Below are positions 2-52,600 of a stretch of DNA of 64,000 nucleotides, in pieces. The notes under the pieces were generated by a model, which saw only the letters and a list, made by a program, of their open reading frames with translations, made no database searches and was not told the origin of the DNA. A program made the translations under genes and the position numbers. The stretch's first letter is position 1. Every line of letters starts with the position of its first letter. The stretch is from Macrostomum lignano (Eukaryota), in NCBI GenBank assembly GCA_002269645.1, contig NIVC01003166.1, positions 1 through 64,000 of the forward strand. The letters are read 5' to 3'.

Positions 2-3000
2 ACCGGTGAGATAGCAGTCTCGTGTCCCGACCCCAGCTTGTCCTACGAGTTCGGCCTTTCTCAGTACGACTGCCTCATTTGGGACGCTTCCCTAGAGATC
101 TGGACAAAGCCGACAACTGGAGGATCCTGCACTGTTGAAGCGTCTGAAGTGCCAAACCGACCAAGATTTGTCAGCAACCTGTTCGGCAGCCTTGGCGCAG
201 GAATGAACGTGCTGCCGAATCTGATCGATTTTGGTACCTTGTTCGACAATTGGCAGGGCAAACTTGCCGACAGCGCCGCAGTACTTGGCACTGTGGTGGC
301 CTTGTGGGTCATATTCATCCCAATTGCCATCTGGTTGCGCCGCGTGGACAACAAAGATAAGCAAAAGGTGATTTTTAAAACTATGCCAGAGATATCAGCA
401 AGCAGAGTTACAAAAAGGATAAGAAGTGTAAGGACCAAACATAGGACCGAGAGCGGTCATTGTCAGGTCCAACTGACCAAAGCTTCTTGCAAGCAAAACA
501 ATTTTTTATTAATCCATACACTAAAATTTAAACAAATACACTAATTAAGAAATTGAGCAATTTATATTAATCAAAATGAATATTTGGTTTGCTTGAGACT
601 GACTTTGGCAATTTTTCAGAGACCATGACACATTCTTGGTCGTTTTCGTTGTGCATTGGTATTTAAAAACAAACCCTTTCGTTAATTCATCCTAAAATCA
701 CTTTCTGATTTTTTTAAATAATAATATACTATACTACTTGAACTGAAAGCACAACCTTGAAATTACGCTTCATGCAGATCTCTAGTTTAAAAACGCCTCA
801 TTTGCCCTCTGTTCTGATTTTTAGTTCGTGTACCTACCCCTGATCGACGACCAGAAGGAGCAGTTTGTCTACAAAATCGATGTGTACACCGCTAGCGAAA
901 AACGAAAAGGCGGAACGAAAGGCTGTCCAATAATGTCGGTTACTGGCGAGCTTCACAGAGAAGCTCTTCGAGTACTGTCCGACGGAATTCGAGAGGTGAG
1001 CTTATCGAAGTCTGAAATACTATAACCTAAGATCAGTAATCAGTTTGCATGTATCCATTCGTACGGCTGTGATTTTTTGCAGAACTTCAAAGCAGGTGAC
1101 ATAAATCATTTCACAATGACAACACCGAAGCATCTTGGTGACATTCTTGAGATTGAGCTTTCACTGGAAGGTCCAAAAACAGTTACGCCATGGCTTTTAA
1201 GAAGAGTTATTATCACGGACATGTCGTGCAATGTCAGGTATGTTCTCAAATACATGCAAGCATTTGCTTTAACTAGGTTTAACTAAGTATCCTCTATTTT
1301 CAGCTATATCTTCGTCACATCAGAAACGATTCTGCCGCACAAAGAGCCAACTAGCATAGAGCTGGCGAAAAAAGATCAGCTAGCCTATCAGCAGAATTTT
1401 GTGAAGACCAATCTATCAAGAAAGTTTCTGGACGATCACCTTTGGATGTCAGTAGTAAAGCGCAAGACAGACACAAACTTTTCCAGGCTGCAGAGATTCG
1501 GCGTTTGCTTTTGCCTGCTGTTTCTCACTATGATTTCCAATGCCATGTTCTATGGCGTCGGCGAAGGTGGACAGTCAGCCTCGGACACCATCACGATTGG
1601 ACCGATCAAGCTGTCAGTGAACACTCTGTTCACCTCTATGCTGGGTGCCGTAGTCGTTGTGCCCGTGTCAGCTGCTGTTACTATTTTCTTTTTGAAATCG
1701 AAGAAACGCAAATCAGCTAGCGAGTCGGAGGAGCGGAATTCTTCGAAAGAGACTGGTACTGAACAGCAGTCGGATGCGCAGTGCGAATCTATCGATGATA
1801 CGGCAGTCGATCCGGTGAGTACTGTTGAAGCTAAACTTGATTACAGCAGCATAAATTGAAGCGTTTAAAGTTGGTTAATTTTTGAAAAATTGCGTTTAAA
1901 ACACTTTAGAACGACCTGGGAATCGTTATTCGACCTAAAAAATGCGCCGATTTGGAGACGCCAGGCACTGAAGGCGGCATCATTAATCCAGCTAGTACGC
2001 CGCTGGTGCCGCAGCAAAGCGAACTGCCGTCTGCAGGATTCCAGCTGCCGTACTGGTTCCAGTACATCGGCTGGGCCCTTGTTCTGGGCAGTATGCTGGG
2101 GGCCGGCGTGTTTCTCGTCTTCTACGCTATGCAATGGGGCAAAGAGAAGTCGCAGCAATGGCTGCTGTCGTTTGTACTGTCCTTTGTGCAAACTGCCTTT
2201 CTGGTGCAGCCGCTAAAGGTGCGAGTTTAATTAGTTTAAAAAATTATATTACATCATGTTAACATCATGTTTGTGTACCGTCATAGCATACGCATCAAAC
2301 TTTCAAAATGATTGGTACTCAATCATGCGGCGCTATGATGGTCCTGCAGACAGCTTGAAACAGCCTCGTAAACATTACATTTAAACACCGAAGTGATAAT
2401 TTGCTATCGACTTTCACTCTACAGGTGGCGTTAATTGGATTCATCCTGATCGTACTGTTTCGCAAGGACTACGACGTTGAAAACTTCACCCTGATAAGAG
2501 TTCGCTACTTCAATGAAACATTGCAGAGAGGTAGGCGCAACTTATAAGGATCAATGTATATCATATCTTGGTTAATACAGAGTGGGTTATATGCGTATTT
2601 GAAATGCTAGCCAACATCTATATTGAAAAAAAAATGCTGCAATATGTGGTTCTAAAATACTCTTTTCAGAGGGCGTAGCCTTCCTATACGAGCTGGAGGC
2701 GAAAGATCGGCAAAACCCGGTTCGCAAGGCTGCAATCAACGCCACACTGAAGCTGGTCCTCACTGTGCTCTTGCTCCTGCTGCAATACTGCATTTGCTAC
2801 GGCAATATCGACCCGGGAATGTTCCGATTGCACAAAAGTGTCAAGACGCACTTGAACTACGACGATTTTGCGTCTGTGACTGGAACTGCTTCCCAGCTGT
2901 ACAGCATAATAAACTCGAGCATCCTACCTGCTGTGTATCCCAGCTCGGCCACGTTCCTCGTCTCCGATGGGTGCGGCTACCGTCTAAGCAGAGTGTCCGT

Positions 3001-5164
3001 GCGCCAGCTCCGACGGCGTCGCAACCAGAGTCAGTCAGACTTCATCAGGCCTCCGGACGACGAAACTGGCTGCTTCAGTCCTGGCTGGGCAGACGAAACT
3101 CCGTGCAACTTGTCGGCGTCGCTGCTAGCGCAGGCCTTCATGAACCGGCCGGACGGAGCGCCGTACAACGGGCTGCTGGCCGATTATCGCGGCGGCGGCT
3201 TTGTAGCCCTGCTGCCCGACGGTCTGGGCTCCAGTCAAGCTTTTCTCACCGAACTGAAGCGTTTAAACTGGTTGGATTCGCACACTAAACTTGTGGTTAT
3301 TGAGCTTGATCTGTTCTACTCGGATGTGAATTTGTTTACATCAGTTGCTATGGCAACAGAGCTGCAGTCGTTCGGCGGTGCTCAAGCAAGCTCGCAGTTG
3401 CTAAGCACTCGCCTTTACCGCTATGTAGGCGCTGTTGGCGTATTTGCGCTGGTATCAGAAATTCTGGCCGGCATTCTGACTCTGCTGCGCATCGTATTTC
3501 TTCTGGTTCAGCTTTGCGATGGCCGCAAGTTCTGGACTAACTTCGAGAACTGGCTCGACATCGGCGTGATCATCTTCATGGTAATCGCCTGTGCGTTCTA
3601 CGGGCTCCGCACGGCCGGCACTGGCGGCGCACTAGAGGCGGCAATCAACGGAGGCCGGCCGCAGCTGCGCCAGCTGCTACTGCTCAATGAGTTCTTTTTC
3701 TATTCACTCGGATTTTCGAGCTTCCTTCTGCAGCTGTCGCTGCTTGGGCTAATCAAATTCAGCTCCAGTTTGGGTCATTTGTTTGGCACTCTGAAATCGT
3801 CTCTAAGCCACTTGAGCTCGTTTGCCGTCTTCTTCTGTGTGATCTTCTTTGCCTTTTGCTTCTTAATGAACCAGCTGCTTGGTGCAGTGCAGATGGAGTT
3901 CAACTCACCTTTAGGCACCATGTCGACGATGTTCTCAGCCATGTTAGGAAAGTTTGACATGGCCACGGTCAGCAGCCATGGGATGCTTCCAAAGCTGGCC
4001 TTCTCTCTGTACGTCTCCTTTTTGATATTCATCGTTGTCAATCTGTTCGTGGTTATTCTTAACGACAGCTACGAGGGGGCCAAGGACACCGCGCAGGGCG
4101 GCGTCGGTGGCGCGGGCGAATTTCAAATTGTCCAGTTTGTGATGCAGCGACTGCGCGACACGTTCATTTCTAAGGACTCAAGACAGAGCTACAAGGATCA
4201 TGAAGGTTTGCTTTTGCTATTTCTGATTTTAACTTCACCAGCACGTGCAGGTTCATTGTGCTTTCTTTTTGTGCACCACTTTTTTGTATTCTCGTACCAT
4301 TTTCACCCAAACGTTGTGAAGACAGTACGCTCGTAGAACAGTAAATTAAATTGCATGTGACGATAATATAGAGGAACAGTTTTAGCCTTAAACAAAAAAG
4401 CTGATAAGCGGTGGGTGAAAGGTAAAAATTACTTTTTGGCATGCTTAAAGTAATTAACTTGGCAAAAGTTTTACCGTAGTAACGACGCTATGGAGAACGT
4501 ATTGACGTCAAATAAAATATATTTTTTTATGTTCTTTAGGAATAGTCTTTCATAGAAAATCATATTTTAGGTTTGATAGTTTAATATACTACCTTTAGCT
4601 CTGGACGTGTCAAGATCATCTCCGATCCAACGACTGTTACAAGACCACTGTGTGGTAAAGGCTTAAAAGCCTTTCCGGTGGCAAAATCATATTCTCGATT
4701 CCGTAGGCAATCTAGTAAACTGTTTTCAAGTTTTGTTGCATTGCCCGGTAAAGCAGAAATTTTAGCTTTGAGTAAGGTATATATATGACACCAAGTTGTT
4801 AGTGAAATTAGAATTAGCTGCTATTAAATAATGGCAGACACATTTTCTCATATATGAAGCCAAGCACAACACAAAGTTTTTAATTCTAATATTGCGCACA
4901 TTTTGTTTGACTACAATTGCAACAGCATATTTTTCCACTTCAGATCTGGACAGTACAGTGAACCGAATGAGCACTAAGTTTGGCATCATCGATTCGATGC
5001 TCAGCAATTACGAACGATCAGATCGAAAATATGACCGGCAGATCTGCCTGTCAATTACCGAGTCCGCTGCCAGCGACTCGTACAGCTGTAACCGAGACAG
5101 CATTGTCAGCGGCTGCTCGAGACGCGACCTGAGCCAAAGCCCCAGCAAAAGGAATGCCGTGTGA
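2..5164 (+). CDS. Polycystin-1-like (PKD1L-type) protein, 5'-partial: GPS-like region, TM1, PLAT domain, TM segments, PKD channel domain, C-tail
   Basis: Phase-consistent GT-AG exons: <2-367, 825-995, 1083-1237, 1304-1814, ~1958-2218 (acceptor uncertain), 2425-2530, 2670-4205, 4944-5164. Motifs: CLIWD..W..C (GPS), VLPNLIDF, YKIDVYT..GGT (PLAT), DDHLWMSV..FSRLQR..MISNAMFY, WLDSHTKLVVIE, LLSTRLYRY, VNLFVVILNDSY. Confidence 0.9.
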
Positions 5165-17717: not shown

Positions 17718-18670
17718 ATGCTGACGAACGCCTTGGAAACCTACGCAACTCAGGCCACAACTCACAGCCTTGCGCGACTTGCTGGAAGCAGGCCGGGTTA
17801 TGTAAAAGCTCTCTGGTTGATTGTTTTCCTGACATCACTGACCCTCTGCTCCGTGCGAATCTACGAAACTTATCGAAGCTTCTCGTCTGGCGATTTGAAA
17901 ACTATTGTTCGAGCAAACCAGCTGCTGTTTGAATTTCCCGATATTTACTTGTGCCATCAGAATTCTATTTCAGGCAGCTACTCTGTGACTCTCAATGCTG
18001 CGGACAGTGTCCTGCTCAGCTATTTTCGCCGGCTTGCAAACGACAGCATCTCTGCGCTCAGAATGAGTGGAGACAGAATGCTGGCAGAAAACTACGCCAT
18101 CCGACTGGTGAACACGCTGCCGTATCAGTTTCTGTCGGACAAAATGGGACGCAGAGTCAACCAAATCGTTCCCATCTTTAACTTCAATGGAAAATATCGA
18201 GAAATAGTTCGCATTTTCAGGCATCCATCGTTTCTCAACTGCTTCGCTTTGAATTTAACAGACTCGGACATTCGAATCTTGCAGAGCCCGACCAGCAATA
18301 TTCAACTTGGCGTTTTCCTTGACCCACAGCTGCCAGTTCCATTTGACAACTCCACTGAGCAGGATGTTCAACAGTTTGCTGGAGTTGAGTTCAATCTAAA
18401 GCCGATGCAATGGAGCATAAACTTTGGGTCAGACATGGTAGGCCTAAGCGGATTGCAGCTTTTCATCACGCCAAGAGGCCAGTATCCCAGTGAACTGGAC
18501 GCGACTCTGTCCATAGGATCATCGCAGTACCATCGGCTTTCGATCACGATGTATGACACAGTTTATGACCAAGACCTCAGTCCGAGCAGATGCGCAAAAA
18601 ACGATGAGCTAGTTGATATTGTTGATCCCTACACTTTGAGCAAGAATACTTTCAAGTTTAGCAGCGCTTA
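17718..18670 (+). pseudogene. DEG/ENaC family channel, 5' half (interrupted by Helitron)
   Basis: TTHSLARL, TM1 LWLIVFLTSL, FEFPDIYLCHQN, HPSFLNCFALN, GLQLFITPRGQYP; the frame breaks exactly at the element's CTAG end. Confidence 0.88.
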
Positions 18671-18893
18671 CTAGCAATCTACGCCCCCCGTTGGGGAGCC
18701 AAAGAAATGCAATACACGTTTTTTTAATAAGCTACATGTATCCTTGAAATCTTAAAAAATCTCCTGTCAAACCTTGTAAGCCTTGACATGTCAGTTATCC
18801 CCCCCACAAGCTTTAACATATCAACTTCCCCCCTTGACATCTCAGCAATGCCCCCAATAAGCCTTGGAAATCTAAAAATATCTGTCAACCTTC

Positions 18894-18966
18894 TAACCCT
18901 AACCCTAGCCTAACCCTAACCCTAACCCTAACCCTAACCCTAACCCTAACCCTAACCTAACCCTAA
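18894..18966. repeat. (TAACCC)n telomere-type microsatellite inside the Helitron 3' region
   Basis: About 12 imperfect TAACCC units read directly. Confidence 0.9.
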
Positions 18967-19862
18967 AGCATTGAAATTTCAGTAATTCTCTCTAAGAGTC
19001 ATTATAGCACTACTACAGCATTATAGCGATTCCTTGCAGGCCTCAACATCGTAGGGATTCCCAAATGAATCTCTTAACTTCGACATGAAGCTTCTTTTAT
19101 TTTTTACATTACGCTTTTTTATCAGCGATCCCTCCCCTGAGGAGGCATCAAATAATGTAATAAAAAGTTTTCAATAAACTACATGTAGCTTCTGACTTTA
19201 GCCTTGAAATCTCATTTATACCCCCGTGAGCCTTGACATCTCAGCTATTCCCCCGTAAGCCTTGACATGTCAGCAATGGCCCCCATAAACCTTGAAATCT
19301 AAAAAATCCCCTGTTAACCTTGAAACCCGATAAAATATAACCCTCAACCCACACCTGACCTAAACCTTACTTTAACCCAACCTAAAGCCTTGAAATCTCA
19401 GCAATTCTTCTCCCCTAAGCCTTGACATTTTAGTGATTCTTTCTTTAAGAATCACAGCACTATAACGATTTCCACCAAGCTTTGACATCGTAGCAATTCC
19501 CAAATGAATCTTTTAACTTCGACATGACTTTTCTTTTATGTATACATAGTGCTACTTTTATTTTTTACATGACTTTTCTTCTATCAGCGCCCCCCGTGAC
19601 GAGCCAACAAAGAATGCAATAAAAAATGGAGTAAAGTACATGAACTTTGAAGTAGCTTCTGACTTTTGCTTTGACATCTCAGAAACCCCCCCCCCGTAAT
19701 CTCAGTTATTCTCTGAGAGCCTTTACGTCTCAGTTTTTCTCCCCAGCACAGCATTATAGTTGCATTTAATTTTTACATGAACCCTTCATGTCTGACATGA
19801 CGTTTCTTTTATTCTACCGTGACGCTTCTTAATTTTTTAAATGACACTTTCATTAGTTTTAA

Positions 19863-20120
19863 ATGAGGCTTCTATGATTTTTTCTTGACGCTTCTATGAT
19901 TTTTACATGATGCTTCTATGATTGTTTACATGACGCTTCTATGATTTTTATATGACGCTTCTACGATTTTTTACATGACGCTTCTATGATTGTTTACATG
20001 ACGCTTCTATGATTGTTTACATGACGCTTCTATGATTTTTTAAATGATGCTTCTATGATTTTGTAAATGACGCTTCTATGATTTTTTAAATGATGCTTCT
20101 ATGATTTTGTAAATGACGCT
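19863..20120. repeat. 23-bp minisatellite (ATGACGCTTCTATGATTGTTTAC) at the point where the Helitron coding sequence is truncated
   Basis: About 11 tandem copies read directly. Confidence 0.9.
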
Positions 20121-23100
20121 TTACGCTGGGACACAGCACTCCGTCCACAGTGTGCAGCGCCTCGAAGCTGGTTGGCCCTCTAACCTGCAGGAGGAGCATT
20201 CGCATATAAAACAGATCCCCTGCTCTCGGACTCACCGTGTACATTCGGGCAATGTTCGTGTTGTGCACAACACCAGGGTGGCCCTCAACTCTCGAACCCT
20301 TCTTGGCGCGGCGCCACTCCCTCTCGCTGTGGTGCCACACGAAGTAGGACGGCACCTCGGTGTACACCAGGCCTCTAGCGAATTCATCAGTGCGGCACAG
20401 CTTGAAGAAAGCCGTCAGCGTCGAATCTCTGGGCGCCCTGGCCTTTGTGCTCGCATTTTGCTCGTTGAAATACACGAGCTGCTCGTTAGACTTGTGCACG
20501 CACAATCGGATCACAGCCGGAAATCTGTTGTGCACCTGTTGTGTTTTAGTTTAAAAACCATATCATTATTTTCCCATTCTTTGCTCCTAGCACTGCCTTG
20601 CAAACATCTATGACTTACTTCAAAGCCCAAGATGGTATTCACGGCTTCCATTGGGCCTATGTAGCGCGCCAGCAGATACTCCTTGATCTCATTTCGCCCC
20701 TCCTTCTTGGCTTGAGTCGGAGCCTTGCTAGCTGAACCTTCCTGTCGTTCGCCATCCGCAGCCTGCTCTCCTGGCCCGCTCGGCTTCTTGTTTGCCTCGA
20801 ACTTGAACGACGCCATGTCGCCGCCTTTTAGCAAGTACTTGATCACGTACTTGACCGACTTGACGGTGGCACAAACTTCAAAGTTCATGTGGCATTCGAA
20901 AAGGAGCAGCAGGCCCGGGTTGTATGGTACAACCGACCTGTATTTGTGCCAGGAAAAGAATTGCTAATTAATGATTTATGTATTCTAGCAATGGTAAATT
21001 AAACTTACAGTAAATAAACAATTTAGCAATATAAATAAACTAAACACAAGGCTAAACTAAGTACTTTGCTTTCGTATTAAAGAATCAACCTTTCAATCAA
21101 GTCTGAAAAAACACCAACACCTCCTCACTCACCTGTTGTCCATGCGAATGCTGCGGCCTTTGAATAGTTTGTCCACCGTAAATCCGCCCATCTCAGGGGA
21201 CAGCCTGCGATACAATGGGTAGCCAGTATCGCTGGTTAGGGTCGCCTGCTGGAACTCCTTCGGGAAGCCCTTGCTGCACTGGCCGTCCACCATGCACGGG
21301 CAGGCTGGATTTACCACGCCGCAGGGGCCATGGATCATGTGAGTCTTCACCAGCTCGTGCAGCCTCGGCTGCTGCTGTGGGTCCGGGATCTCAGCGGACA
21401 CGATTTTGTCGTAGCGGTCCGGAGTCACTCTCTGTCCACTGACCAGCCAGAGCAGAAAGTGCACATGGGGGAGACCTGTGGAAGACATAAACAAGTGATT
21501 CAAAGCGACGTATGAGTGATCACAATTTAGTCATGTAAATTAATTAAAATTCTAAACCAGCGTTTGCATCGTAGAGAAAGCGGAGTTTGAATCATGGAGA
21601 AACTGGAGTTTGAATCATGGCTAAACCAGAGCTTAATTCCGGTTTGCAATGACCCCTTGCATAAAAATATGGATTGCTAAACCTGGAATGCAATTACAGA
21701 ATGAAAATTGAAAGCGCAATTTGCTAACTTACCGCGCTTCTGATATTCCAGAGAGCAAACATGCGCGGCCTCCTTTCCAAAGCGCTTCCTCAGCTCGGCA
21801 AGCAGAGCCTTCTTCTTCAGCTCGAAAACACGCGTGACAATATCCGGCCGGTCCTCAGGTCGCTGTCCAGGCAGCAGCTGTGCACTGATTTCCGGCCACT
21901 TAGGGTTGCACGTCGCCGTGACAAACAGGTCCGGCTTGCCAAACTTTTGTACATAGGTCATGGCGTCTTGCAGCCTCTCCATCAGGTACCTTGGCCCGCC
22001 AACGAAGCTGGAGGACAGGAACACGTGCGCAGGCTTGCCAATATCAGTCGGATTTGTGTCGGTCGACCTGCCATCAGCAGCGAATAGAGCGTCTCGCAGA
22101 CCGCTGTACGTCTCACTGCGCAGATCGCTCTGATGGGTCCGCAGATAGAGCAGCCTCTCTGACTCAATCTTGGCGCACATGTCCACCAGGTACTGCTGGA
22201 ACAGCCGCCGTCCGTGGTGCAGCAGGCTGCTATGGCCCGCTCGCACCATGATTTCGCTGGCATAGTACTTCATCGGCGTCAGCTTGCGGCCATTGCTCAT
22301 GCGCAGCTCCGGGTGCCAGCCGTCCTCGCCATGGGGGAACAGCAACACGTACTCCAGTGCATCATACGATCGGTGCGTTTTGCTAATCCTCTTGTAGCCG
22401 CCACCCCGCAGTTGAATGACAACATCTCGGCTAGTTGCTGGCTCATCACCGTCTTCAGGGGCCTCAGTGTCCTCAGTGTCCTTAACAATGAGGATGCCGA
22501 CCTCGTTTGCCGTGGGCAAATTGTAGCGCCTGATTTTGAACGGTAGTAACAAATGCTTTTAACAAAACTCTTTACAACGGTAAACATTCCTGTGTACACA
22601 GGCACAAAGCTTTAAAAGACAGGTTTTAAAATGTGTTCGAATCCCTTTTCAGTTATTGTTAGCTCACCGAATGTGTTCCCCAGAAGGTCTTCGGTCCGGG
22701 TGAATCACGATTCGCGCATCCACAAGCTCCGGATCCTCCATGATCCGCTGTGCTGCAGCCTTCAGGCTCCGAACGTAAAGGTTGCACTCGTGAAGCAACG
22801 TCTGTAGCAGCTCATGTAGCTCTGGCTTCACCCTATCGCTCAGACTCTGCTGGCTTTCGAGTTCGCGGTCAGTGAAGTACACCTGCCAGCCGCGAGGAAC
22901 AGCAGACGCTTCAGCAAACAGCGGCATAGCAGTGTGGTGCAGCTGACCGCTGATGATGTAGCTGGGATTCCAGCCTGGCACCAACCGCGGCTTGGCACTC
23001 AGCGAGGTCAGGTGCAGCACAGAGTTGTAGCTCCGGATGTTGGTCAGGAACTCTGAGCTCATGCCATGCCGGCCCATGTACAGGTCAGCCAGCAGCTGTG

Positions 23101-24509
23101 GCACAGTCCGGGTGGGCAGCTTCACCTTGCCGCCAGCACAGCAGAAATTGCCTGTCTCCATGCGGAACAGCTTGGCACCGCAATGGTTGCATGCCCAGTC
23201 CATTGGCCCGCAGTCATGGGCTGGAGCTTCTGGCCTCGCCATCGTCTCAGGCCTGATAATAAAAATGGAATGTATCTCTTAGTAACTGTTAAATGTAAAT
23301 GTAACTGTTCATTGTGTGTCAGTTTACCTTGCAGTAGCGGGTCCGTCTTCAGCGCGGCCCGCAGTCTCATGTTCCGCCGGCATCGCGCTGGGGCCCTTGG
23401 CCTTTTTGGCCCTCTTGGCAGGAGTTCTGCTTGCTGCCAGGCTTGGGAACTCAGCATCTGTAAAGGCTTGCAAAAGCTCTCGAAGTCTCAGTGACTCGTA
23501 ATGTTCATGGCGCAAAAGCACACGCACAATGGCATTAGGAGGGCGCAAATTAGCCCTGAAATATTGCATCACACTACCATTGGCCTGGTAAATGACCAGA
23601 TCCACATCAAAGCAGCGGCTCAACAAAGAGGCAACTTCATCTGAAACATAAATTCCTGCTTGAAAAGAGGAATTCACGATCTCATCAGCACTCTCAGGTG
23701 CAATGAGGCCATCTGCAATCAGCTGTGGCATGAGTTCTGCAACACGGCAAGACAAGTCCTGCCGCAGGGAGGCTGCGTCAGTTTCCAGCGGGGTTCCACG
23801 CAGCTGATCACACACAGCATAAAAAAAGCAATTGCCATCACCAACAATGGGGATTACCTGCAACTGCTCAAAGGGTACTATAGTTTCTGTACCTTGCTGC
23901 TGGGTGTCCGACCTAAGGGGCAATGGGTGAACGTAAGCACAGCAGCCTTAATTGGCTTTTTAAGACAATTCATTCCTCAAAAATCGTTATCCGCTTAATT
24001 TATACAGAATAAAATAGATACTACAAATTATCCCCTTCAAGGCAATTCAGAAAAAAACAAAAATAAAGACTTGTTATAAAAAGTTACTATACAACTCACC
24101 TAGAAACCACAGCTCCACGGCAACGAATCCGATCGGCTTCCAGTCGGGCAGCCCACTCTGCCTCAGTCTCAGCCTCTCTGCGCTGAGCGTCCCGCTGCCG
24201 CTGTTCTTCCAGTCGGGCAGCCCACTCTGCCTCAGTCTCAGCATCTCTGCGCTGAGCATTCCGCTGCCGCTGTTCTTCCAGTCGGGCAGCTCGCTCTGCC
24301 TCAGTCTCAGCATGTCTGCGCTGAGCATCCCGCTGCCGCTGTTCTTCCAGTCGGGCATCCCGCTCTGCCTCAGTCTCAGCATGTCTGCGCTGAGCATCCC
24401 GCTGCCGCTGTTCTTCCAGTCGGGCATCCCGCTCTGCCTCGGATTCTGCCTGTCGCCGTCGCTTGGCATCGCGGCTCTTCTTTAAACTGCTGGCGCCGCG
24501 TCGAACCAT
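20086..24509 (-). CDS. Helitron Rep protein: STPR-like repeats + OTU cysteine protease + Zn finger + HUH Rep; C-terminal helicase missing
   Basis: Phase-consistent exons 24509-24100, 23912-23328, 23252-22668, 22529-21733, 21475-21133, 20937-20619, 20535-~20113. Motifs: 23-aa AETEAERDARLEEQRQRDAQRRH repeats; GDGNCFFYAV...HEHY; CNHCGAKLF..E...CC..GKV; YNSVL; RYNLPT; LFQQYLVD; SFVGGPRY; PDLFVTATCNPKWPEI; EYQKRGLPHVH; VVPYN; KYVIKYLLKGGD. Confidence 0.92.
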
Positions 24510-24979
24510 GATTGAGAAATGAGAAGTGAAATGAAATTAGTTCAGAAAGAATGATATGGTTTGAAAGATGAAAGTTTGTGAATTTGGATGTCTGAAGAAT
24601 CAGATAAGGTGCCCTTGAGCCAAACTATTACAGGCTATTTATCATCCAGTGGGCTGAATTGGAGCTTATCTTAAGACGCAGGGTAGAAACTGAAAAATCG
24701 ATAAAGAAGAAAGGGGTCTAAATCTAAAAAACCTATGATTTGGGGTGTGGGCTCTCCAGGCCCGTGTGTCCAAATTCCGGGGCAGAGGGCTCACAATGTA
24801 CACTGGTCTGCGCCAGCCAGTGAAAAAAACTGTGAATGTAATCTATTTATGACTGTCTCGCCAGTGGGGTTGATACAGCTATGTACTTTTGACATAGTGA
24901 AATTCTTATCAGAGTTACCAGTATCACTGATATCAGTGATATCATCAATATCAGTGATAATCAGTATCACTTTTAACAA

Positions 24980-25420
24980 AACTGGTTTTGCAATGATTCA
25001 AACTCTGGTTTAGCCATGATTCAAACTCTGGTTTAGCCATGATTCAAACTCTGGTTTAGCCATGAGTCAGACTCTCGTTTAGCCATGATTCAAACTCTGG
25101 TTTTGCCATGATTCAAACTTTGGTTTAGCCATGATTCAAACTCTGGTTTAGTCATGATTCAAACGATGGTTTAGCCATGACTTAAACTCTGGTTTAGCCA
25201 TGATTCAAACAATGGTTTAGCCATGATTCAAACACTGGTTTTAGCCATGATTCAGACTCTGGTTTAGCCATGATTCAGACTCTGGTTTAGCCATGATTCA
25301 AACACTGGTTTTAGCCATGATTCAGACTCTGGTTTAGCCATGATTTAAACTCTGGTTTAGCCATGATTTAAACTCTGGTTTAGTCTGATTCAAGCTCTAT
25401 TTTTGCAATGATTCAAAGTC
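24980..25420. repeat. 23-bp minisatellite (GGTTTAGCCATGATTCAAACTCT) in the Helitron 5' region
   Basis: About 18-19 tandem copies read directly. Confidence 0.92.
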
Positions 25421-26071
25421 AGATAATATTTTATTTACGATCATCTTCTTCATCTTCTTCTTCATTGATATTTATCTTCAATCACTACTGGCTGAAATTT
25501 GACGCAGTGCAGAATCGAACCCTAGCCGAGCCTATAACCAATTCCTAGTGCCTACACATCGGCTATCGGCTAGTCTGTTCGCATCTTTCTTGGCTATCTC
25601 TTTTCAATTGGAGAACATGAATTGTGGCCCTTATAATTCAATTCTTACAGCAAGTCAATTGGAGTAAAAAATTATGACATAATCAATTTCTCAGTCAGCC
25701 AGAATCAGTCTCAATTTAAGTTGGCAATATGGTTACGCAATTTCATTCAAGTTTTGTGTGCATTTGTTCGGCACTGTTTTCAACTTGTTGTGATGCAATC
25801 TTTATCACAATCGGAATTCAGTCAGTCAGTTTTTTCTCTAGCATTCTTACAATGCATTTCAGGTCGAAAGAGCTGCTTGACCTTTGCAAAAAATCATGTT
25901 TTTCGAATATTTAATCCCTTTAACATTGAGCAATTTCTTAGCCAATATGCATGTACCGTCCCGGGAAAATTTCTGATCGAATGGTGCAAGTTTGAAGAAA
26001 ATCGGTTGAGCCGTTCGGGAGAAAATCAATTACAAGCAAGCAACCAAGCATTTCATTTTTAGTATATAGGA

Positions 26072-26741
26072 CTGCTGGTACCGAGAAGTCGCCCGACTGT
26101 CAATTGAGCAGTTTAACTGCACCATATGGCGGCTCCCGCTGCCCTGGGAGTATCGCGCAGCGCCATCGTGCTTTAATCTGACCCAAGTTCCTTCTCCTCC
26201 GCAGATCAACCCGACTCTACTCAGACAGCGAGAGGCAGTTTTGTACAATGCGACCGATCTGTGCAGTGGCAAACCGCCCTGCAAGCTGCGGACGTACAGT
26301 TACGCTTACTCTTCTAGCGACTGGCCATCCGATGCGTACTGGAACACCTTTCTTAGAAGCTATATCAGTAGTTTTCTGATCAATAGAAATGGACCAACGC
26401 CCGGATTTTCGTATTTAGTACACAATGCTACTATTGAACAAGTTCGGCAGTCACTGCTTCTCCTGGAACTGTCTGGAGCCGAGTTTAGAAGTCCCGAAGT
26501 TCGCCTGTCACTTGCGTACAGTTTCAATTCGTTGACTGCCGATGTTGGAGGTTTGTTGGGCCTCTTTCTGGGCATGTCACTTTTGTCGGTGCTGGAACTG
26601 CTGGAGCTGCTGCACGACTGTTGCCTGATCCTTGGTAGGCGGCTGCGCCTGCGGCTGCTCAGAAAAGCAGTTGGCGACTCGCCTGAGAAAGAGAGCGGCA
26701 CCGAACCTGGCGAGTTTGGCGAGACGAGTTCGGCCTTCTAG
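26072..26741 (+). pseudogene. DEG/ENaC family channel, 3' half (Cys-rich thumb, TM2, C-tail)
   Basis: CWYREVARLSIEQFNC, CSGKPPCKLRTYSY, SSSDWPS, YSFNSLTADVGGLLGLFLGMSLLSVLE (GxS filter), stop at 26739-26741. Joined to the 5' half it gives 1623 nt, i.e. 540 aa. Confidence 0.9.
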
Positions 26742-28180: not shown

Positions 28181-37316
<9,136 letters not shown>

Positions 37317-37749
37317 TTTTTCAATGCGTTGAAGCCGATTTTTCAAAATTTACCGTCTAATTAATTACGTCTAATTAGTTTCGTTTTAAGTGATCGAAGC
37401 AAAATAGTTGACGGTTTCGGTCATTTGGTTCAACTATATGATAGCACAAGCCATGCGCAGATCATTAAATCGCTAAGCTTCGTGTTTAAAATATTGCTTC
37501 ATTAACGCTTCACTGCAAATGCTGATATTTAAATTTTGATCGAAAATAAGTTAACTCAATAATTTCTTCCAAAAAAACTTGACAAAATCATTATTCATTT
37601 TATCTTTAAATGCATTAGATTATTTGCCATGGCATACAACTTTCCTTCTCCTTTTCCTTTTCGATTCAAAAAGATTCAAAAAGATTACCAATCTTTTGGG
37701 TTACTTTACATATACTAAACACTAATTATTACATCTTTGATTCTGTAAC

Positions 37750-38000
37750 AGACAGAGAGACCGACGGACAAACAAACAGACACCAACACAGGCAGACAGA
37801 CACTAAGACAGGCAGACACTAAGACAGCAGATAGACAGACGGATAGACAGACAGACAGACACTAAGACCGACACTAAGACAGACAGGCAGACAGACAGAC
37901 AGACACTAAGACCGACACTAAGACAGACAGGCAGACAGACAGACAGATAGACAGACAGACAGACAGGCAGACAGACAGTCAGACACTAAGACCGACACTA

Positions 38001-38033
<33 letters not shown>

Positions 38034-38042
38034 GGCAGACAG
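37750..38042. repeat. Compound ACAG/GACACTAA microsatellite; duplicate at ~44540-44835
   Basis: Read directly. Confidence 0.9.
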
Positions 38043-38426
38043 TTTCAGCAAGCTTCTAGTTATTGACAATCAGCTGATACAATCATATAGCGGAATCTAA
38101 AAACAAAAAGAAATCAAAAATGGTTCGTTGCACATACTGCATGTGTAGTGTGAAGTCGCGTGCAAAGTTTGTATTTTAATTCTGCCTTAAACGTCCGCCA
38201 TACACTACGCAAAATGAGGTTCAGCAAATAAAAAATGGACGCTAAAACTATACACTCAAACACAAGGAGTTCTTGAAAAAGTGGGTTACCCTAGACCAAC
38301 TGAAATACAAACTACATAACTGTAGTTTTAGGACGCTAAAATGCGCTTTTGAACAAAAAGCTGCTTGAATGAACATTGTTTTAATTTTAAACTTTACTTC
38401 AAAGAAAACTACCAGAGGCAGCGCAC

Positions 38427-39043
38427 TTACTGGATATTTTTAATAAAATTAGTATTCAGCATATACAGCTCATAACAGCAGGGTCTTTTCAAGCCGCTGT
38501 ATGATTTATATAATCTTGACCAGGGGTTCATGTCCCATTTCCAAGTTCGAAAGCCGATGTTGAAAATGTCCAAAAGAATCCTTACGAACCGACGGTAGTT
38601 AGATGCTCTGTAAAAGTAGCCGTCCGTGTGCGTCTCAAACAGAAGCTGCTTCACCCTAGCCAGGCAGCCCTCTTGTAAAGCCTGCGCTAGCGAGTCCCAT
38701 TCTGCATATTCGATGTCAATCTTGAGAATGTCGATAGTCGAATTGCCCGGCACAAGTTCCTGAAACAGTTGGCACAGAGAGCGCATCTTCCATCCTTCGG
38801 ATGAGGTTTCATTGTTTGACGACAGACCGATGCTGTAGAACCAGGAACTGTTCTTACGCCTGTGATCCTTCACGCCTAGCATGCTGGGGTCAAACATGAA
38901 CACTCGGCAGCCGAATCTGTCCGCTAACTCGTCATCGTATTCCCAAACGTCATTGATCCCGAACGAGAAGGCGATGCAGCCTTTTGACCGACGAATGTCA
39001 AAGGGCTTGCTGAAGCAGACATCCCAACCGCCATCCTTTATGG
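38427..39043 (-). pseudogene. 5'-truncated duplicate of the METTL24-like methyltransferase C-terminal domain
   Basis: IKDGGWDVC...FSFGINDVWEYDDEL...ILKIDIEYAEW...QLLFETH; the upstream sequence is replaced by satellite at the duplication junction. Confidence 0.85.
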
Positions 39044-39054
39044 TCCTACATGGA

Positions 39055-41206
39055 AAACATAGAAGAGCCACAATGTCAGATATTAAAAAGCCACCGTATC
39101 AAACATAAAAGAGTTACCATGTAGAACAAAAAAGAGCCACCATGTCGAACATAAAAGAGCCACCATGTCAAGCATAAAAGAGCCACCATGTCAAACATTA
39201 AAGAGCCACCATGTCGAACATTAAAGAGCCACCATGTCAAGCATAAAAGAGCCACCATGTCAAACATTAAAGAGCCATGTCAAACACTAAAGAGCCAACA
39301 TGTCGAACATAAAAGAGCCACCATGTCAAACATTAAAGAGCCACCATGTCAGACATTAAAGAGCCACCATGTCAAACATTAAAGAGCCACCATATCGAAC
39401 ACTAAAGAGCCACCATGTCAAACATATGTGACTCCATGTCGAATATATACGTGCCTCCATGTCACACATAAAAGGGCCACCATGTAAAACATATACATAT
39501 GACTACATAACAAACATTAAACAGCCCACCATGTCGAACATTAAAGAGCCATCATGTCAAACATAAAAGAGCCACCATGTCAAACATTAAAGAGCCACCA
39601 TGTCAGACATTAAAGAGCCACTATGTCAAACATAAAAGAGCCACCATGTCAAACATTAAAGAGCCACCATATCGAACACTAAAGAGCCACCATGTCAAAC
39701 ATATGTGACTCCATGTCAAATATATACGTGACTCCATGTCACACATAAAAGAGCCACCATGTAAAACATATACATATGACTACATAACAAACATTAAACA
39801 GCCACCATGTCGAACATTAAAGAGCCATCATGTCAAACATAAAAGAGCCACCATGTCATAAATTAAAGACCCACCATGTCAAACATTAAAGAGCCACCAT
39901 GTCAAACATTAAAGAGCCACCATGTCAAACATTAAAGAGCCACATGTCGAACATAAAAGAGCCACTTTGTCAAACATCTACGAGTCACCATGTCAAGCGT
40001 ATACATGACTCCATTTCAGACATTAAAGTGCCACCATGTCAAACATAAAAGAGCCACCAGCTCAAACATTAAAGAGCCACCATGTCAGACACAAAACAGC
40101 TACCATGTCAAACATAAATGGGGTGCCTACTATCTTGGAGTGCTTGCTATCTGGAGATGCGTGCTATCTGGGGGTGCTTGCTATCTGGGGGATGCTTGCT
40201 ATCTTGGGGGTTCTAGCTATCTGGGGGTGCTTGCTATTAGGTGGATGCTTGCTATCTGGGGTGCCTGCTATCTTGGAGTGCTTGCTATCTGGAGATGCGT
40301 GCTATCTGGGGGTGCTTGCTATCTGGGGTGCTTGCTATCTGGGGGTGCTTGCTATCTGGGGGTGCTTGCTATTAGGTGGATGCTTGCTATCTGGGGTGCC
40401 TGCTATCTGGGGGTTCTTGCTATCTGGGGGTGCTTGCTATCTGGGGGTGCTTGCTATTAGGTGGATGCTTGCTATCTGGGGTGCCTGCTATCTGGGGGTG
40501 CTTGCTATCTGGAGATGCTTGCTATCTGGGGGTGCTTGCTATTAGGTGGATGCTTGCTATCTGGGGGTGCTTGCTATTAGGTGGATGCTTGCTATCTGGG
40601 GGTGCTTGCTATCTGGAGATGCTTGCTATCTGGGGGTGCTTGCTATCTGGGGGTGCTTGCTATCTAAGGGTGCTTGCTATTAGGTGGATGCTTGCTATCT
40701 TGGGGTGCTTGCTATTAGGTGGATGCTTGCTATCTGGGGTGCCTGCTATCTGGGGGTGCTTGCTATCTAGAGATGCTTGCTACTTGGGGTGCTTGCTATC
40801 TGGGGGTGCTTGCTATCTGGGGGTGCTTGCTATCTAAGGGTGCTTGCTATTAGGTGGATGCTTGCTATCTTGGGGTGCTTGCTATTAGGTGGATGCTTGC
40901 TATCTGGGGTGCCTGCTATCTGGGGGTGCTTGCTATCTGGAGATGCTTGCCTTGCTATCCAAGGGTGCTTGCTATCTGGGGATGCTTGCTATCTAAGGGT
41001 GCTTGCTATTAGGTGGATGCTTGCTATCTGGGGGTGCTTGCTATCTGGGGGGTTGCTTGCTGTCCTGGGATATTTTTTTGCATTGCACTTCATTTGAGCA
41101 GTTTTTCTATTGTCTATGTGAAGGCTTTATTTGGCCGTCTTTTTGATACTTGTAGAGTGCCAGAGATTCTATCTAGATGCCCCCCATCGGGGGCGAAGAT
41201 TGCTAG
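39055..41206 (+). mobile_element. Duplicated 3' part of the non-autonomous Helitron
   Basis: Same satellites and the hairpin-GATTG-CTAG|T end at 41203-41206. Confidence 0.85.
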
Positions 41207-41229
41207 TTATATACTACTTTCCACTTCAG

Positions 41230-44109
<2,880 letters not shown>

Positions 44110-44793
44110 TTTTTCAATGCGTTGAAGCCGATTTTTCAAAATTTACCGTCTAATTAATTACGTCTAATTAGTTTCGTTTTAAGTGATCGAAGCAAAATAG
44201 TTGACGGTTTCGGTCATTTGGTTCAACTATATGATAGCACAAGCCATGCGCAGATCATTAAATCGCTAAGCTTCGTGTTTAAAATATTGCTTCATTAACG
44301 CTTCACTGCAAATGCTGATATTTAAATTTTGATCGAAAATAAGTTAACTCAATAATTTCTTCCAAAAAAACTTGACAAAATCATTATTCATTTTATCTTT
44401 AAATGCATTAGATTATTTGCCATGGCATACAACTTTCCTTCTCCTTTTCCTTTTCGATTCAAAAAGATTCAAAAAGTTTACCAATCTTTTGGGTTACTTT
44501 ACATATACTAAACACTAATTATTACATCTTTGATTCTGTAACAGACAGAGAGACCGACGGACAAACAAACAGACACCAACACAGGCAGACAGACACTAAG
44601 ACAGGCAGACACTAAGACAGCAGATAGACAGACGGATAGACAGACAGACAGACACTAAGACCGACACTAAGACAGACAGGCAGACAGACAGACAGACACT
44701 AAGACCGACACTAAGACAGACAGGCAGACAGACAGACAGATAGACAGACAGACAGACAGGCAGACAGACAGTCAGACACTAAGACCGACACTA

Positions 44794-44826
<33 letters not shown>

Positions 44827-45219
44827 GGCAGACAGTTTCAGCAAGCTTCTAGTTATTGACAATCAGCTGATACAATCATATAGCGGAATCTAAAAACAAA
44901 AAGAAATCAAAAATGGTTCGTTGCACATACTGCATGTGTAGTGTGAAGTCGCGTGCAAAGTTTGTATTTTAATTCTGCCTTAAACGTCCGCCATACACTA
45001 CGCAAAATGAGGTTCAGCAAATAAAAAATGGACGCTAAAACTATACACTCAAACACAAGGAGTTCTTGAAAAAGTGGGTTACCCTAGACCAACTGAAATA
45101 CAAACTACATAACTGTAGTTTTAGGACGCTAAAATGCGCTTTTGAACAAAAAGCTGCTTGAATGAACATTGTTTTAATTTTAAACTTTACTTCAAAGAAA
45201 ACTACCAGAGGCAGCGCAC

Positions 45220-47004
45220 TTACTGGATATTTTTAATAAAATTAGTATTCAGCATATACAGCTCATAACAGCAGGGTCTTTTCAAGCCGCTGTATGATTT
45301 ATATAATCTTGACCAGGGGTTCATGTCCCATTTCCAAGTTCGAAAGCCGATGTTGAAAATGTCCAAAAGAATCCTTACGAACCGACGGTAGTTAGATGCT
45401 CTGTAAAAGTAGCCGTCCGTGTGCGTCTCAAACAGAAGCTGCTTCACCCTAGCCAGGCAGCCCTCTTGTAAAGCCTGCGCTAGCGAGTCCCATTCTGCAT
45501 ATTCGATGTCAATCTTGAGAATGTCGATAGTCGAATTGCCCGGCACAAGTTCCTGAAACAGTTGGCACAGAGAGCGCATCTTCCATCCTTCGGATGAGGT
45601 TTCATTGTTTGACGACAGACCGATGCTGTAGAACCAGGAACTGTTCTTACGCCTGTGATCCTTCACGCCTAGCATGCTGGGGTCAAACATGAACACTCGG
45701 CAGCCGAATCTGTCCGCTAACTCGTCATCGTATTACCAAACGTCATTGATCCCGAACGAGAAGGCGATGCAGCCTTTTGACCGACGAATGTCAAAGGGCT
45801 TGCTGAAGCAGACATCCCAACCGCCATCCTTTATGGACCCGATTCGCTTGCTATTAGGGCAGAAGATATGCTGCTGCTCTACTAGCTGATAGTACAGATA
45901 TTCCAATTGGGTCTGAGACATGGCAGCGAGGTTAGCTCGGAGTGCTACACGAATTTGATCACAGTGCTGTCCTTTGAAAATTGGATCATTCTTCAGAGGA
46001 AAGTCAATAAAGCTTCCAATGTCGTTCGTCAGTTTGATATTGGCAGAGTGGCTGCTTAGGAAATTGACGTTAATGTAGCTTAGGTGCACTATACTGGCAC
46101 CTATTGAGGTGTTTGCTTTAAGTGCACTTACATTCCATTGTCGAAATCCAACACTTTTCAGTTCCATCAGAGCACGAATATTTCTTTGAAGCTCGTCAGA
46201 CGTCGGAGACTTTGTTACGTCGAATTCAATATTCAAGAGTAGCTGCTTTGTTAGTCCCAGCGAACCGTCAGTCGCGGCAGTTTTCAGCAGTGAAAAATTT
46301 CCTGACTGGATGTCGATTTTCAACACGTCGATCACTGATTTATCGGCTTTGAAGCGCTTTAGGTAGCCGAGATAAGTGTTGGTACCGACAATGTCGTTAG
46401 TAGTGAAGTTACCTAGACCCTCTCTGAGCAGTAGAATGCGTTCACTGTGCAGTCGACTAGATCGCGTCATTTTCGGGTAAAATGACAATACATAGCAGCC
46501 ATGAACTGTGGAGAAGTGTTCTTCGAATACTGGAGACGTCACATTTTCGCTGAATGAGAAGACGTAGCAAGGCTGAGTTGGACTGTATTGGCCCGCCGTG
46601 CACACGTTGTAGCCAGTGGTATTTTTACCGTTTTTAACCATTGCAGTCTGGTTATTGTCGTGACAGAGCTCCGTTGACTGCTTCAGCATCTGCTTGAGCA
46701 TATTTTCCAACTCTGGTTTTGTTTTGCTTTGCAGTTGGTGTCGAGCCATGTCAACATTCCAGAGCCATTGCGCAGGTGTTCCTAAGGATAAAAAGCTGCT
46801 CCCTGGTTTACGTGTTAAAGTTTCGGAAGTTTGTGTATATTGGCTCAATTGAGCAACGAACTTACTGGATCCACTGCGTAGAATTACAGTTTTTATACTT
46901 ATTACAGTCAGCATTGCAATTATAAATCCGATGGTTATTCTTTTTAAGCATGTCGTACTTTGAAAACAGCCGGGCCTCCTCCATTCGACCAGAAGCAGAT
47001 GCAT
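45220..47004 (-). CDS. Intronless type II membrane protein with two tandem METTL24/FkbM-like methyltransferase domains; in-frame TAA at 45733-45735
   Basis: N-terminal TM ITIGFIIAMLTVISI. Domain 1: YNVC...CYVFSFS...IDVLKIDIQ...TKQLLL. Domain 2: RIGSIKDGGWDVC...CIAFSFGI...MFDPS...LKIDIEYAEW...KQLLFETH. The ORFs 45733-47004 and 45220-45696 are in one frame across the stop. Confidence 0.8.
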
Positions 47005-49625: not shown

Positions 49626-52600
49626 ATGAGTTGTCCTGCCATGCAGCTGACGTCATGCAGCATTCAGTTCAGCAAGCTGGGCGACCCGCTGATGTCGCTC
49701 GATTTTGCGTCCAACGAGGCGCAGACGGCGTCCACTGTTACAGTTTACAATCGAAAGTCGTTCGGCATGCAAACCAAAGTCTGCGATGCTCCCCTGCCAA
49801 AAAGTGGCAGTTCGTCCTCGAATGAGTTGAAGAGCCTGCTTCATCAAATATTGACCACGGTTGAGTCTTTCAGAACAGAGATGGGCTTCGACAAAGACTT
49901 TCACGGCAAAGCGGCTGCTCATCCTGAGCAGGGCATGCTAGCATTCCACTTCTCCCAAGACCCATCATCTGCGGAGGCCCCGAATCAGCCAGTCTGGAAT
50001 GAGGCCTGGACTCGAACCCCTAGAGCCGATTTTCCCTCGAAAATCGAAGTGACTAGCGGTGAATTCGGACATCAATTCGTGTTTCGAGCGGGTAAAATGC
50101 TGACGGAGCTTAGAAGAAAGGTAGTTAACAAATGTCATTTGTATTTTTTACTGGCAAAATATATATTTGATAATTTAGATGGTTCTCATGGACATAGTCA
50201 CCCAATTTATAAATGGCATAGGTTTCCAGGGTCACTGGCATGAGCACAGTCACCCAGCTGTTAATGGCATAGGTATCCAGGTCACTGGCATGAGCACAGT
50301 CACCCCATCTGTTAATGGCATAGGTATCCAAGGTCACTGGCATGAGCACAGTCACCCCATCTGTTAATGGCATAGGTATCCAAGGTCACTGGCATGAGCA
50401 CAGTCACCCCATCTGTTAATGGCATAGGTATCCAAGGTCACTGGCATGAGCACAGTCACCCCATCTGTTAATGGCATAGGTATCCAAGGTCACTGGCATG
50501 AGCACAGTCACATAGAGATTTCGATGACATGAGTGTGTACAAGCACATGCAGCGTCATATTGTTTTCATTTCAACACTGCTCCAAAAAACGTCCCGTTGA
50601 ACAGCGCAACAACCGGGAGACCTTGATGATCACTGATGTTAACGGCGTTAACAGTACCGGCGACGAAGAAATTTTCGACGCCATCGACAGTGAAATATCG
50701 GATAGCCATCGAGTGTGCTTCGGCGTTCGCTGGACAGCCAGAACTGGCCGTCTGCGCGTTGTCTGCTGGCTGCATCCTGAGTGGCCGGAGCAGCGACTGG
50801 CACGAGCTGGACCGCATTACAGCGCCTGGCTGCGCAGTCGAATGAGGAAGGCCGCTGTTAACAACTATCTGTGCGTATTGGACGATTTCGTTGGAGAACG
50901 AAACCAGAGTAATTCAAATGATGTCGCGGAGGCTGTACTGGCAGAAGCTGACGGCAGAGGAGAAGGTAAGTTTACACTGAGTTAGCGAGGTAACTTGGTA
51001 CTTCTCGGTCCCTCGGTCACAGTCATATCGAGATTTTGATGACGTAAGTGAGTGTGTACAAGTACATGTAGCACACGTCTAGCTTTCTTTGATGTAAAAC
51101 TTCGAAGTTCACATAGGGCTTTGACCACTGTCGCAAATTACGAAATGGACAGTTGACCCGAGAGAAAGGTAGAAAGTAAGCGAGTTAGTCAGACCGATTC
51201 CACCGACCTCACAGCACTCAAACGGATACGTGCGCAGGAACACACTAACGCAGGACACTTGTCTTGAGGGTTTAGCTCGCGTGCCCCTAAGTAAATCATA
51301 AGGCAACCCTTGATTTATTTTCGGGCACAACGTCTAAATCCAGGACAGTTCAATGCGAGAGTCAGACGCTTTACCGCTGATGTTCTCTGGCCCTACGAAG
51401 TTAATATAGCACTCGGTTTCTTACTTTTTCCAGACTGCCCGCTATTTTTCTTGGCCGTGGAGTCGCACAGTTTCACCGTGGCAGATTGGCTCCTCGAATA
51501 CAGAAAAAAACTGCTCCGACAAGAAGACGACAGGATCGAAGTTGTTACCATTCAAGCGATTGACGCCTACAATAAATGGGGCGACACGGCGCTAACGCGT
51601 TGTTGCGGTCGCGGCGGTGATCCAAAAGTCATCAATTACTTGCTGTCCAGAGGCTGCGATCGGCTTCATCAGACAGACATCACCGGTAACACCGCTATGC
51701 ACCGGCTCGCCGCATCAATTCCGTCAACTGCCGACGGTCAGACTGTGGTTCGGCCGGTGCTCAACGCCCTGCTGAATGGATTGTCGGTCGATCTGCTCAC
51801 GGAGTGGCTTGCCAAAGAGAACCACGCAGGGGAGCGAGCGGCGGCTTTAGTTTCCAATGCCGCTATGCTGGATGCTCTGTTGGAGGCGTTGGAAATTCCA
51901 ATGGCCAGGTGACGAAGTTAAATTATTGTATTCTTGCTTTTGTTTAACTTGCACCGACCAGCCTGTTTACAAGATTTTAGACTATTTTGGGGAAATAACG
52001 CACCAACCATACTAGAATTTGTGTCACAATCCAAACTACAGTTTGTGTCACCATCAAAACTACAGTTTGTGTCACCATCCAAACTACAGTTTGTGTCACC
52101 ATCCAAACTACAGTTTGTGTCACCATCCAAACTACAGTTTGTGTCACCATCCAAACTACAGTTTGTGTCACCATCCAAATTACAGTTTGTGTCACCATCC
52201 AAACTACAGTTTGTTTCACCATCCAAATTACAGTTGGTGTCACCATCCAAATTATAGTTTGTGTCACCATCCAAATTACAGTTTGTGTCACCATCCAAAT
52301 TACAGTTTGTGTCACTATCCAAATTACAGTTGGTGTCATCATCCAAATTACAGTTGGTGTCACCATCCAAATTACAGTTGGTGTCACCATCCAAATTACA
52401 GTTTGTTTCACCATCCAAACTACAGTTTGTTTCACAATCAAAACTACAGTTTGTGTCACCATCCAAACTACAGTTTGTGCCACCACCCAAATTACAGTTT
52501 GTTTCACCATCTAAACTACAGTTTGTGTCACAATCTACACTTTAGTTGTGTCACCATCCAAACTACAGTTTGTGCCACCACCCAAATTACAGTTTGTTTC

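Follow-up and report, generated by a model that had tools for sequence, protein, structure and literature searches.

Gene-disrupting Helitron insertions are well known in plants, where sh2-7527 and ba1 are classical insertional alleles, and natural maize alleles such as ZmAbh4 (PMC9520448) reportedly have a Helitron in or near the gene. Elements of the HLE1 type have TC...CTAG termini and a 3' hairpin as their hallmarks (Helibat/Helraiser, PMC4778049; HLE1 in HELIANO, PMC11417382), and 46 of 1,751 Helraiser insertions were found at sites other than AT, mostly TT, AC and AA (PMC4778049). In this study we describe an insertion in the flatworm Macrostomum lignano, located in a stretch of 64,000 nucleotides (contig NIVC01003166.1 of assembly GCA_002269645.1, positions 1 to 64,000), which was analysed as a whole and is referred to as the window. 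A 7,401-bp segment splits the gene of a channel of the DEG/ENaC family, and we consider it very probable that this segment is a canonical Helitron of the HLE1 type, non-autonomous, which rolling-circle transposition placed in the channel's only coding exon. The features that carry this reading are as follows.

17718..18670 (+): 5' part of the host DEG/ENaC gene, codons 1-317 and two bases of Tyr318, with the first transmembrane helix (TM1) and the proximal ectodomain (open reading frame (ORF) listing, Pfam)
18671..26071 (-): Helitron, helicase-deleted, 7,401 bp (termini, Helitron_like_N, collinearity with the Logan loci L001-L005)
18671..18699 (-): 3' terminus of the Helitron, with a hairpin at 18699-18683, the spacer GTAGATTG and CTAG at 18674-18671 (fold; conserved in the copies ending at 29101 and 34421)
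25572..26071 (-): 5' terminal region of the Helitron, TCCTATATACTAAAAATG from 26071 (similarity to the copy at 31039-31540)
18672..18674 (+): premature TAG stop, made by the palindromic CTAG terminus of the antisense Helitron (direct reading)
26072..26741 (+): 3' part of the host gene, with the third base of Tyr318, Cys319, thumb, palm, GMS filter, second transmembrane helix (TM2) and stop (Pfam, alignment)

The element is like the described HLE1 elements (Helibat1/Helraiser, PMC4778049; PMC11417382) in its 5'-TC and CTAG-3' ends, in having neither terminal inverted repeats nor a target-site duplication, in the T that follows its 3' end and in a Rep domain with an HUH motif and two tyrosines. 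Its hairpin ends 12 nt from the 3' end, and that of Helraiser lies 11 nt upstream of the end of the right terminal sequence. The relatives of the copy carry an OTU-like region upstream of RepHel, a PIF1 helicase and, downstream of RepHel, RPA-like OB domains, as in HLE1. The copy in the channel gene differs from HLE1 in its 5' flank, which is G (C in a second copy), in the loss of helicase and RPA, in its wealth of satellite arrays together with a telomere-type repeat, and in an OTU match that lies below the Pfam threshold. With the HLE2 elements (Helentron, Helitron2) it shares the general character of rolling-circle RepHel transposons, which may carry OTU and RPA domains and whose non-autonomous copies are often loaded with tandem repeats (DINE-1, PMC4067079); however, the short inverted repeats at the termini and the T|T target of HLE2 are both not seen here. 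As in the plant alleles, an insertion in or near a gene would give a natural loss-of-function or altered allele, but here the host is a flatworm, and an ion-channel ORF free of introns is interrupted midway through a conserved motif. We found no earlier description of the channel insertion in the literature on Helitrons with degenerins or with Macrostomum.

By direct reading, the insert occupies 18671-26071 and has its sense strand on the minus strand, antisense to the channel gene. The left host flank, ...AGCAGCGCTTA, has its last base at 18670; on the plus strand the insert then runs from CTAGCAATC at 18671 to ...TATATAGGA at 26071, and the right host flank, CTGCTGGTAC, has its first base at 26072. 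The sequence statements of the earlier note all agree with this reading. On its own sense strand the element opens with 5'-TCCTATATAC at 26071 (more fully 5'-TCCTATATACTAAAAATG), with the 5' TC of HLE1, and closes with a GCTCCCC-AAC-GGGGGGC hairpin of 7 pairs at 18699-18683, the 8-nt spacer and CTAG-3', which is the HLE1 arrangement of a CTRR end with a short hairpin ~10-12 nt upstream. Terminal inverted repeats are absent, the 5' TCCTATATAC being unrelated to the reverse complement of the 3' end, CTAGCAATCT. The insertion splits codon Tyr318 after its second base, where no host base was lost or duplicated, and the rejoined flanks form an unbroken conserved motif with no repeated base, so there is no target-site duplication, in line with the earlier note. 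The boundaries can be slid by one base each way, because the last base of the element and the base before it are both G, and its first base and the base after it are both T; of these registers only TC...CTAG has canonical termini, and in this register, too, independent copies cease to match. The minus strand of the insert carries a Helitron_like_N Rep domain (PF14214, E 4.3e-46 in Pfam), which together with the termini and the hairpin establishes the Helitron identity that had been proposed.

Removing the insert restores the host gene. The segments 17718-18670 and 26072-26741 add up to 1,623 nt, an ORF of 540 codons followed by a stop and free of internal stops or other lesions, and the restored junction reads ...FKFSSAY|CWYREVAR.... 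The restored protein matches the Pfam profile ASC (PF00858) over profile positions 1-455 (E 3.2e-40), while the 5' half alone matches positions 1-297 (E 2.6e-16) and the 3' half positions 302-455 (E 9e-19). In an alignment of 11 sequences the junction lies within the (Y/F)SxAxC motif with no gap, and Cys319, the first full codon after it, is invariant. The reading frame alone would be restored by chance in 1 of 3 cases, but since the two halves abut on the ASC profile and their join recreates the motif gap-free, the match is more than chance; these alignments show that the predicted restored protein is collinear with its homologues. The proposal of a precise insertion into a single-exon DEG/ENaC coding sequence, whose excision restores a 540-aa ORF, is thereby supported. 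The invariant cysteines (C79, C175, C292, C319, C382 and C388) and E493 are kept in the same alignment, and the GxS selectivity filter is present as G485-M-S487. An AlphaFold (AF2) model of the restored protein has a mean predicted local distance difference test score (pLDDT) of 72, and about 90 across residues 301-330; its helices span residues 27-57 and 469-518, and the junction falls at the start of a helix, after a strand. The best structural matches are FaNaC, ASIC and ENaC subunits, with at least 500 aligned columns and Foldseek E values of 1e-17 to 1e-21. The restored channel has in common with FaNaC (8on7, 7yvb), ASIC1 (2qts, 9e4a) and ENaC (9btg) the ASC domain, two transmembrane helices, the GMS filter and the ectodomain cysteines, and differs from them in having only 14-18% identity to the solved structures and HS in place of HG before TM1. 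By prediction, the host is a full-length single-exon DEG/ENaC channel with two transmembrane helices and a Cys-rich ectodomain.

Full-length homologues were found by an exhaustive HMMER search at 25-30% identity, and the five best, when looked up, were all from Macrostomum lignano; identity to any database protein is at most 30%, and a word-indexed protein search with the restored channel gave no matches at E <= 1e-5. As a separate observation, a 5-bp inverted repeat, AGCAG-CGCTTA-CTGCT (18660-18670 and 26072-26077), has the inferred target at the 3' edge of its loop. We do not take this loop to be a target feature: 4.7% of window positions lie in such loops, and its presence is probably due to chance.

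Inside the insert, satellite arrays alternate with coding sequence, as listed here from the 3' to the 5' end of the element.

18742..19440 (-): subterminal repeats of ~29 nt (AGCCTTGACATCTCAGC...CCCCC), with like units beside the 3' end of another copy at 28880-29030
19820..20121 (-): 23-bp tandem array, 13 copies, where the helicase coding sequence should go on (TRF)
20137-20535 (-): Helitron coding exon (tblastn with L001 proteins)
20607-20930 (-): Helitron exon with the two-tyrosine motif KYVIKY (tblastn with L001 proteins)
21132-21482 (-): Helitron exon with the HUH motif HVHFLLW (tblastn with L001 proteins)
21725-22510 (-): Helitron exon with Helitron_like_N (tblastn with L001 proteins, Pfam)
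22667-23203 (-): Helitron exon, Cys-rich N-terminal region (tblastn with L001 proteins)
23417-23887 (-): Helitron exon, OTU-like, GDGNCFFYA (tblastn with L001 proteins; Pfam below threshold)
24137..24440 (-): 69-bp coding tandem repeat, 4.4 copies, with a 23-aa unit ...AERDARLEEQRQRDAQRRHAETE..., N-terminus of the Helitron protein (TRF, ORF 24096-24509)
24982..25417 (-): tandem array of a 23-bp unit, 19 copies, within non-coding sequence of the 5' part (TRF)

The seven retained coding blocks are free of stops and frameshifts and have GT..AG introns between them. The exons in 20137-23887, among them those with HVHFLLW and KYVIKY, are 58-83% identical to the L001 proteins in tblastn and contain no stop, and the 69-bp repeat with its ORF 24096-24509 matches the N-terminus of L001 weakly. 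Among database sequences, the Rep exon has its best relatives in the Logan assemblies SRR316284xx, with 83% identity, and in a protein of Macrostomum lignano, with 59%. In L001-L005 the gene order is OTU-like, Cys-rich, Rep, PIF1 helicase and RPA-like OB domains, and the element is collinear with these relatives at 73-87% nucleotide identity only as far as window position ~20138. On L001 this break falls at residue 133 of the exon that bears PIF1 (486 aa), and the 23-bp array begins there. Homology to L001 reveals no PIF1 helicase within 18671-26071, such as an autonomous HLE1 element would carry; these comparisons show that the copy in the channel gene lacks the helicase, and because the helicase and RPA-like parts are missing we regard this copy as non-autonomous. 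An OTU assignment for the N-terminal ORF was not accepted, since the E values of 0.13 here and 0.008 in a relative are both below the Pfam threshold, and the domain is called OTU-like.

Three further observations concern the internal repeats and introns. A telomere-type run, (CCCTAA) x 12.7 at 18893-18966, lies ~220 bp from the 3' end of the element, enclosed by the subterminal repeats, and reads TTAGGG on the sense strand; the other 3' end copies of the family do not have it. An inverted partial copy of the 24982-25417 satellite, 76-91% complementary to it, is located at 21552-21639 in the intron that splits the HUH region of Rep. At this position the intron is ~245 nt long in the channel-gene copy and ~100 nt in L001.

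The window holds other copies of the same family, which provide an independent view of the termini.

31039..34421 (+): second family element, probably a single non-autonomous element of 3,383 bp, flanks C|...|T (both ends located, satellite arrays)
28880..29101 (+): third copy, a 3' end fragment ending ...GGGGGGGCGTAGATTGCCAG, then T (terminus comparison)

The 5' end at 31039 (+) has the identical TCCTATATAC start, and homology to the channel-gene copy begins exactly at the T of TC; the two 5' ends (that of the channel gene and 31039-31540) are 89% identical over 506 bp, of which 430 bp are at 94%. The 3' ends at 29101, 34421 and 41206 (+) read GGGGCG(T/A)AGATTGC(T/C)AG, then T. The hairpin at 34421 is a perfect stem with a fold energy of z -2.5 against shuffles. 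The copy ending at 29101 has a terminal CCAG in place of CTAG, and ahead of it lie ~29-nt subterminal repeats as in the channel-gene copy; its 5' end was not found. The end at 41206 is not counted as independent, since it lies inside a 6.8-kb tandem duplication of 99.3% identity, and T follows the 3' end in all three independent ends, whereas the 5' flank is G in the channel-gene copy and C in the second copy. The earlier note's G|T target in place of A|T holds by direct reading and is joined by the C|T of the second copy. As the 5' flank is not A in that copy too, it may be a trait of the family rather than a quirk of the channel insertion, and a relaxed non-A 5' flank may thus characterize the family.

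The element at 31039-34421, probably a single one of 3.4 kb, consists mostly of satellites, with a 23-bp array of 74 copies at 31626-33329 and a 17-bp array of 55 copies at 33334-34275. The segmental duplication (32271-39043 and 39057-45836, in tandem) begins within this satellite array and copies the Helitron 3' end (34421 to 41206) and part of a gene; the ORFs 38427-39071 and 45733-47004 have the peptide IKDGGWDVCFSKPFDIRRSKGCIAFSFGINDVW in common.

For the inserted allele the consequence is immediate. Because the palindromic CTAG directly follows the host TA, the frame reads TAC TAG, and the ORF 17718-18674 encodes 318 aa. This bears out the earlier note as to the immediate stop, though not as to a TM1-only product, since ~270 ectodomain residues (~60% of the ectodomain) remain besides TM1; the thumb, the rest of the palm, the selectivity filter and TM2 are missing. 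An exact-product look-up of the 318-aa ORF returned no matching record. With these parts missing, the inserted allele is most likely null. In the sequence of events that we propose, a helicase-bearing relative would have supplied RepHel in trans, and the helicase-less Helitron would have inserted by rolling-circle transposition, in antisense orientation, into the single coding exon of the channel. This insertion in the Tyr318 codon neither removed nor added a host base, and the CTAG end creates the TAG stop, leaving only the 318-aa fragment and probably causing loss of function.

The state of the reading frames bears on the age of the insertion. An unselected ORF of 1.6 kb would be expected to be disabled after roughly 1% divergence, so the intact ORF argues that the insertion is young; the intact host half-ORFs and ~950 Rep-exon codons, all free of stops and frameshifts, support a young insertion indirectly, and the recency that the earlier note had proposed gains the same indirect support. 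Our rough reckoning, which assumes that ~4% of substitutions create stops and that the indel rate is modest, and which is not the result of a tool, suggests a neutral divergence of ~1% or less since the insertion under these assumed rates.

Several observations weigh against a canonical HLE1 insertion into a working channel gene. The hairpin of the channel-gene copy is not exceptional in its fold energy against shuffles (z -0.8) and includes a T-G pair, and the target is G|T, with G in place of the usual A on the 5' side; an A at this place is a preference and not a defining character, so its lack does not exclude membership in HLE1. The HG motif before TM1 reads H16-S17 (17763-17768), where at least 90% of aligned homologues have Gly, and channel function before the insertion is for this reason not certain. 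In beta-ENaC this Gly-to-Ser substitution reduces the open probability, and the channel may have been atypical before it was interrupted. Both junctions are known from the assembly sequence alone, and the 40-mer of the empty site had no matches in metagenome contigs, a collection not expected to hold the source genome. An assembly artefact, in which a copy of the Helitron was placed in the gene by a false join, would be invited by a multi-copy, satellite-rich family; however, a mis-join is not expected at both exact canonical termini with the host complete to the base, and we hold it to be highly improbable. We give as little credence to the 7.4 kb being a spliceosomal intron, or part of one, in a functional gene. 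An AT-rich acceptor-like site, TTTTTAGTATATAG|GAC, is indeed found at 26056-26069 (the AG at 26068-26069 before an in-frame GAC was already pointed out in the earlier note), and the GT..AG introns inside the Helitron imply that the host does splice such sequences. Yet on either side the Helitron terminus lies directly against a coding base, with no intron sequence left over, and when all in-frame GT/GC...AG pairs were enumerated none recreated (Y/F)SxAxC, which argues that the insert is not an intron. The pair that comes closest combines the AG at 26068-26069 and a weak GC donor at position 18665, and would give 539 aa with AY replaced by D. The comparison with homologues that had been suggested as a check points the same way, in that P0004 is intronless and P0001 has no introns other than those following residues 368 and 458, so that neither of the two Macrostomum lignano homologues checked has an intron at the junction position.

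If the segment is a Helitron insertion, as we prefer, it could still be old and fixed, with the channel long a pseudogene. In Macrostomum lignano the gene lacks a close orthologue (the best match is at 30% identity), which places it in a fast-evolving and probably dispensable expansion, its HG has changed to HS, and the 89% identity of the two family 5' ends over their 506-bp match indicates that the family is not uniformly young. Against this stand the 1,623 nt of host ORF and the ~950 Helitron codons without a single stop or frameshift, and the retention of all invariant cysteines, the GxS filter and E493, and we regard an old insertion as unlikely. The dominant-negative role raised in the earlier note, in which the 318-aa fragment would be produced and would enter trimeric DEG/ENaC channels as a subunit, seems to us improbable: the fragment retains the N-terminus, TM1 and part of the ectodomain, and in a single-exon gene decay that depends on exon junctions need not remove the transcript, but a product that lacks half the palm, the thumb and TM2 would, to judge from the predicted fold, more likely misfold and be degraded. 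More tentatively, and with considerable doubt, the reading of a recent Helitron insertion may be extended to a family that is active now or was very recently, with a 5' target base relaxed to N|T, and to an insertion that segregates as a null allele of a DEG/ENaC channel specific to the lineage.

Elsewhere in the window, the ORF 2765-4336 (+) encodes a PKD/polycystin-type channel with 62% identity to a Macrostomum lignano protein. Of all the matches this one says most about the source organism, and with the ASC and Helitron matches it points to a macrostomid flatworm. Long coding-looking tandem repeats at 51900-56200 and 36418-36981 are open in several frames on both strands, with units such as VTDRCHRQVSQTG at 53608-54759, TNC(N/S)LDGD at 51918-52490 and SVCL at 36418-36981, and the strand composition is strongly skewed at 54001-56000 (AT skew 0.53, GC 0.55). 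A scan for bacterial promoters and terminators, which is not relevant to a eukaryotic locus, found nothing.

The event is of an ordinary kind and leaves the current understanding of Helitrons and of DEG/ENaC channels unchanged. It provides a base-exact Helitron insertion in an animal for which the empty site can be inferred from protein conservation alone, and since empty sites are usually the hard part in validating Helitron boundaries, the case is useful there. It points to recent mobility of a Helitron family among macrostomid flatworms, with the helicase-bearing relatives as candidate autonomous partners and a hint of a relaxed 5' target base in the family, and for one channel gene in a fast-evolving DEG/ENaC expansion it offers a candidate natural knockout. 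If the family is active now or was very recently and the insertion is a segregating null, this would be among the few cases in animals that would allow live Helitron transposition, and its effects on fitness, to be followed in a group amenable to laboratory work.

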